Shown here piece by piece: positions 57,566 through 64,000 of a DNA stretch of 64,000 bases. A model generated the notes under the pieces. That model made no database searches. It was not told where the DNA came from and saw only the letters and a list, made by a program, of their open reading frames with translations. This DNA is from Guillardia theta CCMP2712 (lineage: Eukaryota > Protista > Cryptophyta): positions 258,776 to 322,775 of the forward strand of contig NW_005434583.1 in NCBI RefSeq assembly GCF_000315625.1, given 5' to 3'. How positions within the stretch are numbered: position 1 is the first letter of the stretch; each line of letters starts with the position of its first letter. A program made the translations under genes and the position numbers.

Positions 57566-60500
57566 ATCTTCTTGTGCCTGAGCCACTGTCCAGTGCTGTA
57601 AATTTATGTTGATTGTACAGAATATCATGCACGCTTTCAAGCGCGATCAGAGTAGAACTTGTTGTAGTCCAGCTGCGAGCAGAGGTTGAGGAGGTGGGGG
57701 TCTCCTCCTCCCCGGCAATACGTCCGCAAGCTCTCGAGCAGCATCGTAACCTTCTCGTCGAACTCTTCTTGGTACTTTTCGACCGTCTCTCGGTGCTGAG
57801 AGTCACGTCAGCTAGCAGAACGACCAAGAAGCAGCATATCAAGGAGATGGCATGATGAAGAGAAACAAGGGAGGGACAAGGGGAAACGACAAGGTGGAGC
57901 AATAACAAGCTTTGAGAGCCATTGAGCAAGCACAAGACTTTGGAGCCAGCACCTTGGGCTCCGAAGCCAAAGTAGAGGCTAAAGCGAAATATTGCTGGCG
58001 AGTGTGACGCTGCTTGACCAGGGAAGAGACACCCTTGTACTCCTCGCTGTCATCACGATCACCGCTTGTGCTTCCATCCATCGATCCTCCCTCTCTCAAG
58101 GAGAAGAGAGATGTCTTCGTCTGCTCTAGGCGTCAGCACAAGCAAAGGTGGGAGGGCAACAGGCCTTGATGTATCTTGCGAACTTCGTGCATGTTGCAAC
58201 AGATCGCGTCAAGAGCTTGAGGAGATGCGGGTCGTTAAGGACAAAAAGCTTGATGCAGGTGTCAAGAAAGCGGTCGTGAATGCGCAGGACGTCTTCCACG
58301 GTCTTAACTTGTCGCATGTTCTCCTGCTCGTCGTCATCATTGAACACTTGATTGTCTCTCAGCAAACCTTGAATGAGTGCCAGCAATTCTCCACCACGTC
58401 ATTCACCAAGAAATGCCTAGAAGAATTATACGAACCTCAGGCGAGATCACATTTCCCACGTAACTCACTGTAGACTTTGTATGAAGTGGAGCATCCGAAA
58501 TCTGTATTGAAAGATGAGAAGATTAAGACAAGCGAATCTCAAGAACACCTCAATGAGAAGTCCAATGCAAACGCATGATGCACTTGAAAGCCTTTCGTCC
58601 CTTGATGGCAAACCCATGCAGCATTGAGCTCTCGCTCCGCAGTCTGCGGTCAAGTTGATGGTGGTGGAATAAGGAGCGACGAAACAATTACCTTGTACAA
58701 GAAGAGATGGCGGAAGAGCCAACGGTATTTGGTCAGAGTCTTGCGCGAGAAGACTATATTCAACGGCCACTCCACCTGCCTCTTCCATTGAGAAGTGTAA
58801 GCGAGATGGTTGCAGACCTTGTAGGAGAGCGCAAAAGTCTCCAGGCCTGTTAAGATTGAAGTTTGTTCGAGAGCTTTACTCTTGATCCCTTTGTCTGTCC
58901 CGTCAATGCTGATCACATTCAACACCTGCACTCCTCGAGTCATTGAATCGGCTTGATTGACTCTGATTCTCTACCTCGTCCAAAGCAGAGCAATTCATCA
59001 TTTGGCAGGCGAGGTCGTCTTTGTAATCATCCGTATTGGCTGTGGATGTGACCAAAGACAAAGAAAGCATCGAATCCAACTTGTTCTTGTTGATATGCTG
59101 CACATCTTTGGAAAGCTCCTCCTGCACATGATACGTTAGTCCTATGGATTCATATCGCAGAACCAACATATGCTGTATCCATGAAATGCACGAACCAATC
59201 CCCAAGATCCAGCAAGAAGTAGTGTTTGACCTGCATGCCTGTGTTATTTGCAAGTCGGACGCAGCTGGTGAGAAATGCGTCAATGTGAGCAACAACTTAC
59301 GCTCTCAAGACGAGTCATCAGATTCTTTTGCTCGGTGAGGAGAGCGAGGACTCTTTGAGATGAAATCGTGTAGGCCTTGCTAACTGCATCATGCAACATG
59401 GCACAGATTTGCCAATTTCACCTGGTCGATTAGAGTGACATAAATTCTGCTGTTTGCGCTGTAGGTGAGCTTGACAGTAGTCGGGAAACAGACCGTTTGA
59501 CCACATTCCCGTAGTACAGTAAGGTACCTGACTCAGTTCTCAGTAATGATAATGGAATGGGAAATATCTAGACTATCTATGATCAAAATAAAAAATTGAT
59601 GGAAACAATTAAAGTCGATCTTAAATACAAATGCTTTTCATACTTTCCGGTTGTCATGATTTTGTGTACAACCTAAGAAAAAGTTTGATTCATCACATTG
59701 TATGTGCAAGATAGCTGCGAGACCTCTTTATCAGACAGGAAGGAAAGAATATGTTGTTCGCGTTTCAAGAATCGCTTTTCCCAGTAAGAATCATCGTAGT
59801 ATGGCCTGACACAATGCGTCAAGACTTGGCATCTTGTCTTTGTTACTTTCACCTGTTCGGTCTTTCCTCCACCATGAATTCGCTGTATGGGTCTTGCACC
59901 ACCCCCTAAAGAAAGAAGGAGCTGAAACTTTGTTGAATTACTGCAGTAATGAACCTGATAGATCCATTTCTCAAGCATCTCAAGGTATGGTACAGAACTC
60001 TTCTGAAGCAAGAAACTGTAAAGCTTTGAGACAGAATAGGAGTAAGTATTTCGAGTAAAGACAACAGATAGCACCTTGGAAGCGTACTGTTCTCCACTCG
60101 CTGCGTTGGCATATGCATGCAACACATTCAAAAGTGCTCCTCCTCTTGAAGCAGACTTTCCATTCTTGCCTGGACAAATATTCGGTACCACTTCAACTTT
60201 CAAGTCACAAATTCACTTGAACTCTCTACGGCTTCGACCAGTTCATACAAAGCACGAAGAGTGTGCATGGCGGGCTGAACATAATACCAAAATTTCTGCA
60301 CAAGACCAGTTATAATCGTATTCTTCTCAATCAAGAACGAGAATTCCTGAAGATTCAATTTTGAAGCAGCGAATTGATACTCTAATTGCGCCACGAGGAT
60401 GAGATACTCTTTGAGGAGTTCTTGAAGGGCAGCACAGAGAGCGTGATTGACAAGTCCTGCCAAGAGTTGATCAGTTCCATGATACAAACTCGAAGGAATT

Positions 60501-61344
60501 CTCACCAAATTCATAATGTTGACGTAATTCTGTGAAACGAACAACTCGAACGTAATACTGGCACAGTGATACCATCCGATCCACCATATCTGAGAGTGAC
60601 AAATCCAAAGATGAATCGTGTTTGACAGTCAAGCCCGGCCCCGAAGCAGTCACCTTATTAGTTGAGATGTCAGTTAGAAGACTTCCATATTAACACGAAA
60701 ACAAGCTGGCAGCAGCAACAGATTTTTTTCTATGTAAACTGAAACTTTTGAGAAAGATGAAGCAAATTCTTGTGCAGTCACAAGAACCTATTGAAAAATT
60801 ATTCAGCTACCTTGATCTTGAGATACTTCCCATCGATGCCTATCATCACTGATAAGAGATCTTCTATGATCTGGGCGAAACAAGTGACTGTCTGATAAAC
60901 CAGCTAGCACAAGGCGTTCACCATGAGCTCCTGCATGGATGTCGGAAAACTTCCTATTTTCTGCTTGCCTTCCTCAGGTTCGGTGCTTTTGGACTCAAAT
61001 AGATGAGAGAGAGTCAAGTAAGGCCTCGATACGGTCCAGCCAGGTGCAACTGGAATGTGTCCGAGAACGGCATTTCCCATAAGACCGGATCCTCCTGTCA
61101 TAGGAAGCCGGCTCTTTCCCGAGGGAGTCATGTAGCCTGGTATGGATGCATGCTCACTGGCTGATCCTCGAGCTATCATTGGGCTCGCTGCTACTTCCGT
61201 CATGCCGCAATCGATTCTGAACTTCAAGGTCAGACAAGAAGCGCTTTGTCGTTCAATGCTATGAACTTTTACATGACGATAAAATGTCTTTCTCCATCTT
61301 AAAATGCATTTGACCTGCTTCAGCCCATCATCCTCACTATTCAT
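57558..61344 (-). CDS. TUBGCP2: Gamma-tubulin complex component 2 (Spc97/GCP2)
   Basis: GIDGKYLK, GLVNHALCAAL..YLILVAQLE, RGGALLNVLH, PYLEMLEKWIYQG, YWEKRF, TTGKYL, GLETFALSYKVEWPLNIV and HDRFLDTC. Start uncertain. Confidence 0.9.
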
Positions 61345-61658: not shown

Positions 61659-62049
61659 GGTTTAGGGTTTGACCTTTAGGGTTGGACCTAAACCCTAAAC
61701 CCCCTGTTGGGTTCAACACCTGTTGGGTTTAGGGTTTAGGGTTTAGGAACGGGCCCCTTCCCGACCCAGCGGGCCCCTTCCCGACCCAGCGGTTTAGGGT
61801 TTAGGGTGTAGGGTGTAGGGTTTAAGGTTTAGCAGCAGTCTTAGGGTTTAGGGTTTAAGGCGCCGTTATTTTCGGCAGCATGGCTCCTTGCCAGGTGTAG
61901 GGGAAGCCGCCAGGGCGCCAAGGAAGCTGCAAGCGAGAGGTTTGTATACTTCAAATAGCTTTCTAAGTATGGTTCTTCAGTATGATGAAAATGTTCGCAA
62001 CCTGCTGTATCGAAGATCATGCCTTTAGGGTTTAGGGTTTAGGGTTTAG
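61659..62049 (+). repeat. Interstitial telomeric (TTTAGGG)n blocks interrupted by short unique or duplicated inserts
   Basis: Blocks at ~61659-61683, 61726-61747, 61792-61860 and 62024-62049, with one inverted CCTAAACCCTAAACC at ~61687-61701. Confidence 0.9.
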
Positions 62050-62213
62050 CGCCGGTTATTTCAGGCACCATGGCTGCACGCGTGGTGTAGGGGAAGCTGC
62101 CAGGGCGCCAAGGAAGCTGCAAGCGAGAGGTTTGTATACTTCAAATAGCTTTCTAAGTATGGTTCTTCAGTATGATGAAAATGTTCGCAACCTGCTGTAT
62201 CGGAGATCATGCC
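61861..62213 (+). repeat. Diverged ~163-bp direct repeat (61861-62023 and 62050-62213) separated by 26 nt of telomeric repeat
   Basis: Both copies start directly after TTTAG(G). Copy 1 ends ...gatcatgcc followed by TTTAGGG, while copy 2 continues into the long ORF. Confidence 0.93.
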
Positions 62214-64000
62214 AATACACGCAGAGCGGACTTGTGGATGCCTCTGTCCTCGAAGCTGATCTCGTCGAGAGGGTGAAGAGCTTCGCGAAGCGTTATCCGA
62301 ACAGCAGGACAGCCCAGGCTTGCAAGGCTGTGGAGGGATGCACCCCCGACGCTATCGCAGAAGCCATCCGCTCGACATGTCAGCAGGCACGACGTGAGCT
62401 TCTGCAAGAAGCGATGGCTGGATGGAGTGACGCATCCAGAGAGTGGTTTATGCAGCAGATTGAAGAAGCCAAGAAAGAGCAGGTCGAGACATACACCGCC
62501 TCAGCAGGCAACGAGGTGACTTCCTTCATCTCCATGACTCTCCTGGGCATCTCCTCGGTGTATGTCAACCATGAAGAAAAGCTGAAGAAGAAATTTGAAG
62601 AGATCGGACTGATCGTAGACTCAGTGCAAGAGAGTAAAGCAATCATGTGGAAGGCTCCGTATAGACCCGAGATAGCGAGTGCTGAGGAGATCCCGGTGAC
62701 TGTTTCCTTCCTCCGCAATGCACAAGCGGAGAAGCTCTGGCAGGGAAGAGAGGACTTCGCGATCGATGGTCGCAAGTTCACAGCTGTACATGTGAGCATC
62801 GTGCACGATCGATCTTTCAAGATTCGAGCCAAGAGAGGACCCTGGGGCAAAGGGGGCAGCTTGGCAGAGCTGACTCACCTGCTAACCTTGGGCGGCATGA
62901 CAACGGCTGAGATAGCTGCCGTCTATCGCTATCAGCTGCTGCGCCAGTCCCTGGCAGCGGTACAGCTCCAGCCGCTGGCAGGCATGCTGGTCGCTGGGGC
63001 GCCAGGCCAGCAAGTCCACAAAGGCTTAGGTCAGAAAGGCTTCATCGCTGTAGGGGCCAACGTCATCTGGAGACAGAGGGAGGTGGAGTGGATCGTCTCC
63101 TCGAGCTGCCCAGAGGCGAATGATACAGCATTTCGAGCTTTCCGAGAGAGCGAAGCGATGGAGGGAGTACACCTGACTCTGTTCAGCGAGGACCCGAAGA
63201 TCAGAGAGGCGCTCGCAGTCGAGTTGACAGCGGATCGCTTTGTGTCCAGAAATAAGTTGAAGAAGGCATCAAGACTGCAGAAGAAGGCAGGCGGCAAGGA
63301 CGGCAAGGAGATCAAGATCATCATCAAGTCGACGGCGGCATCTGGTCGCTTCACGAGGAAGGAGATGGAGGGGCTGTGCAACGGCGGCAACACGTCTATC
63401 GCAAGAGTCAAGAGAGTCTTGTTGGAGATCGCTAACAGGCTCGAGATCAACGTTGAAGGCATCGACATGGAGGAGGATTTGAACACCAAGTCCTGGAACG
63501 GGTCCAAGCTATGCATCCTCCTCGGCTCCACGGAGGATGCTCGACGCATGATGAAGGAGCTGCCCTTCTATCTCGAAGGCGCAGCAACCAAGCTCGAAGC
63601 AGTCGGCTTCGACAAGGAGCCTGACTCTGAGGCGGCTGGTCAGCGGGGCACCAGCGACGCAGCGCAGCGACAGGAGGAGAGCGAGGGAGAGTGGCTGGAG
63701 TTTACAGACCTGGAGAGGATCACAATGGAGGCAGCATCTCCGTCAAGCCAAGAGGACATGCAGCTCGTCAGCGAGCTGTCAGCAGTCATCGAAGATGCAG
63801 CTTCTTTGAACGAGGCGGGGACGAGCGAGCCGATCAAGCTGGTCCTGGACAAGGCCGTTGGCAACCTCCACGACACGTTCTACTCTCCGGGGAGCCTGGA
63901 GTTCATGTCGCTGGGAGAGTGGGCGAAGATGCCAGAGGACGCAGGGAGTTGGGCGCAACGTTCTCAAGGAGAAGCTGGGGAAGTGGCTGCAGAGCAAGCG
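62036..64000 (+). mobile_element. Putative telomere-associated retroelement: intronless ORF of >600 codons (first ATG 62159) with RRM-like segments, open to the window end
   Basis: Manual translation finds no stop from 62036 to 64000. The ORF abuts telomeric repeats and a duplicated terminus. No RT or endonuclease domain is visible in the window. Confidence 0.55.

Follow-up and report, generated by a model that had tools for sequence, protein, structure and literature searches.

Telomere-specific long interspersed nuclear elements (LINEs) have been described in insects, a fungus, Giardia and a green alga. Those of Drosophila (HeT-A, TART and TAHRE) attach at the very end of the chromosome and replace the telomerase repeats, with their 3' ends toward the centromere. 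They have been contrasted with SART1 of Bombyx mori, whose sense strand lies on the G-rich strand and which makes a bottom-strand nick inside the telomere repeats (PMC7265360). MoTeR1 and MoTeR2 of Magnaporthe oryzae form head-to-tail telomere arrays with short telomere tracts between the copies, truncated copies and unstable ends (PMC7367193). The Dualen/RandI group is composed of LINEs encoding both an apurinic/apyrimidinic (AP) endonuclease and a restriction-like endonuclease (PMC4640811); by repeat annotation, Dualen-class LINEs have been reported in cryptophyte genomes, with Guillardia theta listed as an exception without Dualen expansion (PMC12747079). The DNA analysed here (the window, 64,000 nucleotides) is C91:258776-322775 of G. 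theta, a cryptophyte host, as the original prediction made from the letters of this stretch had it. We read the end of the window, with a probability of about 0.8, as the proximal border of a terminal array of retrotransposons that are specific to telomere repeats and of the type without long terminal repeats (non-LTR), in which a 2.68-kb element, family A, is a non-autonomous member carrying only a first open reading frame (ORF1) and mobilised in trans. The system is SART1-like in target and orientation and resembles MoTeR1/MoTeR2 and HeT-A/TART in combining an autonomous element with a short partner, and it is a member of none of these.

The end of the window is laid out as follows.

61793 to 61860, plus (G-rich) strand: telomere units, imperfect and then perfect, adjoining copy 1 (from the sequence and a repeat scan).
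61861 to 62023, plus strand: copy 1, the first 163 nt of a member of A2, a sister subfamily of the 2.7-kb element; its 3' side is cut and telomere units follow directly.
62024 to 62049, plus strand: interstitial telomere tract of three units and TTTAG (3.7 units; from the sequence and a repeat scan).
62050 to 64000, plus strand: copy 2, nt 1-1951 of the 2,679-nt family A element, without leader repeats and ended by the contig end.
62050 to 62158, plus strand: 5' untranslated leader of copy 2 (109 nt), whose first ~26 nt recur as tandem repeats in other copies.
62159 to 64000, plus strand: ORF1-like gene, codons 1-614 of 715, with no stop in the window and homologous to the ORF1 of autonomous LINEs.

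Two copies placed at TTTAGGG junctions and starting at an identical nucleotide had been described from this sequence, and this layout is borne out by the three segments at 61861-62023, 62024-62049 and 62050-64000: the first nucleotide of copy 2 (62050) is homologous to that of copy 1 (61861), and Tandem Repeats Finder reports a 190-bp period at 61841-62213 with 92% matches and a score of 653. In a BLAST search of the genome with copy 2 as the query, copy 1 was matched at 93% identity (E 1e-62). Copy 1 is nevertheless not the truncated twin of copy 2 that it had been taken for, as it belongs to A2 and has a slightly different leader, a variant which recurs on many other contigs. On the plus strand a single frame stays open from 62036 to 64000, with its first in-frame ATG at 62159; minus-strand frames are all of 178 codons or fewer. 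Copy 2 is cut by the assembly: in a BLAST search against the 87.1-Mb, 669-contig genome, base 64000 proved to be the final base of C91. Since the plus strand is the G-rich one and the window ends where the contig ends, the chromosome end lies to the right, as had been proposed.

A full family A copy measures 2,679 bp. The 109-nt leader and the 715-codon ORF are followed by a 425-nt 3' untranslated region (UTR) with a 76-bp repeat inside it and by a conserved terminus, and the copy closes with a (TAA)n tail that varies in length and is joined to the GGG of the next telomere unit. With no LTRs, a defined 3' end, a microsatellite tail and target flanks, it has the make-up of a LINE. The census of these copies combines pattern counts with the reading of ~45 loci; since it is precisely here that the assembly is fragmented, the array lengths and orders given are minimum descriptions. 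Copy 2 has at least 40 near-full matches in the genome at 99% identity (BLAST), and at least 172 family A 5' ends (40-nt 5' probe) and at least 127 3' ends (24-nt 3'-end probe) were counted, against 0 for the reversed-pattern control of either probe. The copies lie almost all at contig ends, and their sense strand is always on the G-rich strand at both types of end: of the 5' matches on the minus strand, 43 of the 44 listed fall within ~26 kb of a contig start, and the plus-strand matches lie at high coordinates, several of them on loci shortened by the contig end. The proposal of a retroelement family tied to telomere repeats and forming head-to-tail arrays is upheld by these copies, as is its expectation that a genome-wide search would return multiple copies near contig ends, abutting telomere units.

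Across 25 distinct 2.7-kb copies one fixed end-to-end structure was observed, and about 24 full-length copies have telomere units after a (TAA)n tail whose length differs among them. The constant, proximal end of the copies is the 5' end, not the 3' end, and in several arrays the innermost copy lies only 2-4 telomere units from unique sequence, as it does in the window. Fragments from the 5' end, cut at 69, 76, 132, 163 or 2,376 nt, form a minority. A constant end combined with variable truncation had been expected; the constant end is there, and some truncated copies are indeed followed by telomere units, but truncation is exceptional and most copies are full length.

The spread of family A appears recent and its coding capacity is conserved. 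Median identity to the reference is 99.25% among 25 distinct full-length copies, 23 of which keep the full ORF. In 25 distinct intact coding sequences the 63 variable sites are divided 41/17/5 between codon positions 3, 1 and 2, and the ratio of nonsynonymous to synonymous polymorphism (pN/pS) is 0.17. Copies that are ~99% identical, arranged in tandem with telomere tracts between them, which contain no reverse transcriptase (RT) and whose ORF, like a host gene, is subject to purifying selection, are also what one might see in a subtelomeric gene family comparable to yeast Y', spread purely by recombination or break-induced replication, with the telomere tracts as scars and no retrotransposition. 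The 5' ends tell otherwise. Telomere units are adjoined directly by 14 of 44 distinct 5' ends, copy 2 being of that type, and in the remaining 30 the first 17-26 nt of the element are present as 2 to at least 20 tandem units, with short linkers between them; the length of the leader unit, the linker and the number of units vary copy by copy, and so does the length of the tail. As duplication in blocks would have kept leaders and tails unchanged, most copies are indicated to be separate insertion events. Spread by recombination alone is further opposed by 5' and 3' boundaries against telomere units that are precise in unrelated arrays, by an order of element families that varies from chromosome end to chromosome end, and by two findings presented below, a LINE-like microsatellite tail common with an autonomous element and a protein that is the ORF1 of the neighbouring LINEs. 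We regard this explanation as unlikely.

The orientation of the copies bears on how they are inserted. A sense strand on the G strand together with a distal tail implies that the first strand was primed by a 3' OH of the C strand, that is, at a nick in duplex repeats and not on the G overhang. The original prediction had put forward an endonuclease-deficient Penelope-like element (Athena/Coprina type), which anneals to the G overhang, is reverse-transcribed from the 3' end of that overhang, is 5'-truncated and is then capped by telomerase. Such an element would account for head-to-tail copies with a fixed end at telomere units, and for the occasional truncated copy followed by telomere units. 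Priming on the G overhang, however, places the 3' end of the element proximally and its antisense strand on the G strand, whereas here the ORF lies on the G strand and the 5' end is proximal; most copies are full length with a microsatellite tail; and the unit is without an RT, the related RTs being LINE-type and accompanied by AP and restriction-like endonucleases. A hammerhead motif had also been suggested as a possible sign of such an element, and neither a hammerhead nor any other Rfam family was matched over the element at E up to 1. Athena and Coprina are like the present elements in forming telomere-associated arrays with telomere units between copies, and unlike them in RT class, in having no endonuclease, in their opposite orientation and in their 5' truncation. 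On the grounds of orientation, RT type and absence of hammerheads in this search the Penelope/Athena interpretation was rejected, and we consider it extremely improbable.

The family A unit holds a single 715-codon ORF, in which no RT or endonuclease was recognised by Pfam; indeed, no Pfam domain of any kind was found in the protein, nor was a meaningful sequence relative in the PDB or a usable neighbour in the ESM Atlas. Its AlphaFold model is poor (predicted local distance difference test, pLDDT, 48.5). The sole recurrent match in structural searches was to a ferredoxin/RRM-like module at residues ~380-485 (Z 7-10, rated middling by the tool), a common module, and this weak resemblance may serve as a lead only. 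The named homologues are all entered as 'hypothetical protein GUITHDRAFT' of G. theta CCMP2712, apart from one Hanusia phi protein (37%), and a profile search of 1.84 billion representatives returned only 56 proteins. A 461-residue protein that is 100% identical to the family A ORF is filed under a transcriptome of the dinoflagellate Heterocapsa arctica; this entry is probably Guillardia carry-over or cross-contamination, and its presence in a transcriptome implies that the family A ORF is transcribed.

The identity of the protein was indicated by its neighbours. When aligned over the full length, the family A protein is 31-61% identical to the ORF1 of autonomous LINEs of about 10 kb which occupy the same chromosome ends. 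On contig C63 the next element past the telomere tract consists of a diverged ORF1 homologue and, downstream of it, an ORF2 that exceeds 2,100 codons and encodes an RT (PF00078, E 4e-35) and an AP endonuclease (PF03372, E 5e-8); both domains are also present in a second G. theta family and in metagenome relatives. With an RT probe, 64 candidates were found in the genome, comprising two intact families and some decayed copies, mostly at contig ends and in the same orientation. One family has ~100% identity to the probe and open frames of up to 2,504 codons, the other 58-59% identity; the decayed copies of a third type are 52-55% identical to family B. A LINE-type RT with an AP endonuclease is present in relatives at the same ends and not in the unit itself.

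Upstream of its endonuclease, ORF2 encodes an Ulp1/C48 protease domain (PF02902, E 5e-7 in the second family). Near its C-terminus, five copies representing both families have without variation a CCHC finger and then PD-x14-E, and a fold search with this C-terminal region returned R2 retrotransposon proteins first and then cap-snatching nucleases of the PD-(D/E)xK type. By these matches ORF2 carries an R2-like restriction-type endonuclease in addition to the AP endonuclease. Pfam gave no RNase H match in ORF2; a feature-score lead of 0.89 pointed to an RNase_H-bearing cluster. In a word-limited search for RT homologues only Hanusia and metagenome relatives were retrieved, followed by LINEs that are ~25% identical. 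The nearest RT beyond the Guillardia/Hanusia group, at 33% identity, lies in a 3,423-codon ORF on a 16.8-kb ENA contig (L045), where it is preceded by a gene with ubiquitin hydrolase (UCH) and weak SET matches; this contig is without telomere units.

Two further loci concern the autonomous families. Near the start of contig C4 (L032, C4:1-10000) a copy of the second family breaks off within ORF2 and nevertheless has an (ATA)5 tail ahead of the telomere tract; perhaps this 3'-truncated, tailed copy arose by internal initiation of reverse transcription. On contig C8 (L039, C8:1187700-1194100) an element with only an ORF1, of 700 codons, and with 20-nt leader repeats of its own lies between two telomere tracts. 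Its ORF has ~89% DNA identity to the ORF1 of the second autonomous family, which shows that several ORF1-only lineages exist and that family A is not the only one.

Complete relatives on metagenome contigs have an ORF1 of 701-713 codons and an ORF2 of 2,481-2,575 codons. On one of these contigs (L044, 10,737 bp), which has ~82% DNA identity to the second G. theta family, the 3' end of an A-like element comes first and is separated by three telomere units from a complete autonomous element of 10.4 kb, whose (TAA)n tail leads into at least 15 telomere units; this layout indicates that the same architecture is present in another genome. In its tail and its final ~24 nt, the autonomous element of L044 nearly matches family A, and beyond these ~24 nt the 3' UTRs of the two are unrelated. 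A likeness confined to the terminus is the pattern expected if a non-autonomous element borrows the RT of a LINE through its 3' terminus, and is suggestive of such an arrangement here. Family A has an ORF1 homologue, no RT and a 3' terminus common with this autonomous element, as is expected of an ORF1-only partner.

Some copies depart from the usual junctions. The family A copy at L002 (C63:7917-12866) has a 3' end of the type of the second autonomous family in place of the usual A terminus, which suggests chimeric copies or a swapping of 3' ends between families. At ~480-520 of L036 (C160:1-10000) the 3' end of autonomous family B runs directly into a 5' end of A2 type, without telomere units, and one frame stays open across the joint. 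Metagenome runs from lake, freshwater and aquatic samples (X12, X14-X19) contain ~79% of the sampled family A words, though G. theta is marine; possible sources are carry-over, a laboratory source or close freshwater relatives.

A further scenario is that family A is itself autonomous, the 2.7-kb units being derived, through internal deletion or 3' processing, from a longer A-type element whose own ORF2 was missed by the assembly. Chromosome ends are collapsed in the 669-contig assembly, family A 5' ends outnumber the 3' tails (172 to 127, both minimum counts), and the decayed RT copies of the third type do exist. At none of the loci read, however, does an RT stand in register downstream of an A-type ORF1; both intact RT families have diverged ORF1 genes of their own; and the structure of the 2.7-kb form is fixed from end to end in 25 distinct copies. 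This scenario, too, is quite improbable, slightly more so than spread by recombination alone.

Our preferred interpretation remains that of an ORF1-only member mobilised in trans within an array of telomere-repeat-specific LINEs, and several points weigh against it. The 3' terminus common to family A and the metagenome element is short, and the family A 3' UTR has no nucleotide similarity to the G. theta autonomous copies with which it was compared. The fold model of the second endonuclease is of moderate confidence (pLDDT 60, best E 7e-4). We infer mobilisation in trans, the site of the nick, template jumping and healing by telomerase from sequence. An autonomous element with an A-type ORF1 could lie in the unassembled ends, beyond the ~45 loci read. 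Some amplification or homogenisation by recombination between chromosome ends is likely, and is inseparable here from transposition. Finally, some 5' fragments are joined directly to the leader of another copy without telomere units (L016); such joints imply that template switching, and not telomerase healing, may explain at least some of the truncated copies.

Under the preferred interpretation, insertion might proceed as follows. The family A RNA would be packaged with ORF1 protein and copied in trans by the ORF2 protein of the ~10-kb relatives. One of the two ORF2 endonucleases would nick duplex telomere repeats on their C-rich strand; the 3' junctions, where microhomology blurs the exact position, point to a site at or beside CCC^TAAA. 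The freed 3' OH would prime reverse transcription on the (UAA)n tail. At the 5' end of the RNA the enzyme may often jump back repeatedly, giving rise to the tandem copies of the first 17-26 nt, before the complementary DNA joins an upstream telomere tract that ends in TTTAG or TTTAGG. Repeated insertion distal to earlier copies would then build head-to-tail arrays with short telomere tracts between them. In the window, copy 1 may be the older insertion, which would have lost its distal part at the chromosome end and been capped by telomerase, copy 2 later inserting 26 bp into the new tract; we give telomerase healing of copy 1 about one chance in two.

When compared with the described systems, the elements are closest in mode of operation to SART1 and TRAS1 of Bombyx mori (R1 clade), with which they have in common insertion in double-stranded telomere repeats, a fixed orientation, retention of canonical repeats and many-copy arrays at the ends; in SART1 the orientation is also in the same direction. 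The original prediction named SART/TRAS-type insertion into telomere repeats as a second possibility, which fits the mode of operation without extending to membership of that family. In SART1 and TRAS1 the AP endonuclease is the only endonuclease, ORF1 is gag-like with CCHC knuckles and the tail is poly(A), whereas here ORF2 also carries an Ulp1-like protease and a restriction-like endonuclease, no domain is recognised in ORF1, the tail consists of (TAA)n, and ORF2 is absent from the commonest member. Membership of the R1 clade was rejected on the protease, the additional endonuclease, the type of tail and the unrecognised ORF1.

MoTeR1 and MoTeR2 are similar to the present system in pairing an autonomous element with a short non-autonomous partner and in having a restriction-like endonuclease. 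They differ in that their 5' ends are nearest the chromosome end (PMC7367193) and in having no AP endonuclease; moreover, MoTeR2, unlike family A, has no ORF1-type gene conserved under selection. The Drosophila elements also form head-to-tail arrays at chromosome ends, and the gag-only HeT-A depends on RT-encoding relatives; here, unlike in Drosophila, telomere repeats persist between the copies and the orientation is reversed. The autonomous partners have both endonucleases in ORF2, as do the Dualen/RandI elements first described in Chlamydomonas, and we call them Dualen-like by ORF2 architecture, as distinct from RT phylogeny. No telomere-specific Dualen family was found described in a literature search, and a literature search, with Repbase outside its scope, returned no published description of telomere-specific LINEs in Guillardia.

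On the inner side of the array, unique DNA extends to ~61660 and is followed by a 200-bp patch with degenerate telomere-type units in both orientations, in which two further features precede the telomere units at 61793.

61661 to 61749, both orientations: degenerate telomere-type units, G-type at 61661-61689 and 61725-61747, C-type at 61687-61702.
61750 to 61792, plus strand: a 20-bp unit in 2.2 tandem copies with a terminal CAG, with telomere units on both sides.

The first of these is the innermost decayed telomere-like tract, lying between the unique DNA and the array. At 61661-61702 its G-type and C-type units join head to head, which may be the trace left by an old rearrangement on the inner side of the array. 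The 20-bp tandem has no second copy in the genome; it resembles the 5' leader repeats of the LINEs described here and matches no leader family observed, and by this resemblance it may be the orphan leader of another LINE family. The last clear host gene on the inner side of the array is a gamma-tubulin complex gene, whose exons on the minus strand at 58126-60544 encode the N-terminal (PF17681) and C-terminal (PF04130) domains. Host genes accordingly stop where the original prediction said they would, the assignment being at the level of the gamma-tubulin complex protein (GCP) family.

Earlier cases of telomeric LINEs have informed the understanding of target choice and of the link between retroelements and telomere maintenance. 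To these the present system adds a host among the cryptophytes whose telomere repeats are of the ordinary plant type, an autonomous element uniting both types of LINE endonuclease with a protease, a highly successful ORF1-only partner (~170 copies, ~0.5 Mb of chromosome ends), and conspicuous 5' leader repeats which record putative template jumping copy by copy. It offers a test bed for asking whether target specificity is determined by one or the other of the two endonucleases, and by what means a LINE recognises a partner with which it shares only a 24-nt terminus. For G. theta itself, it explains why the assembly breaks at many chromosome ends, and it identifies dozens of GUITHDRAFT 'hypothetical proteins' as products of transposon ORF1 genes. 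An additional scenario, to which we give a small chance, is that the arrays are more than parasites and help the alga to build and protect its chromosome ends. The ORF1-only element, which purifying selection has kept intact in well over 100 copies that all point outward, would then supply a telomere-bound protein or RNA, or a means of telomerase-independent re-extension of eroded ends. If true, this would be a partnership like those of Drosophila or Bombyx, independently evolved in a cryptophyte from a dual-endonuclease LINE.

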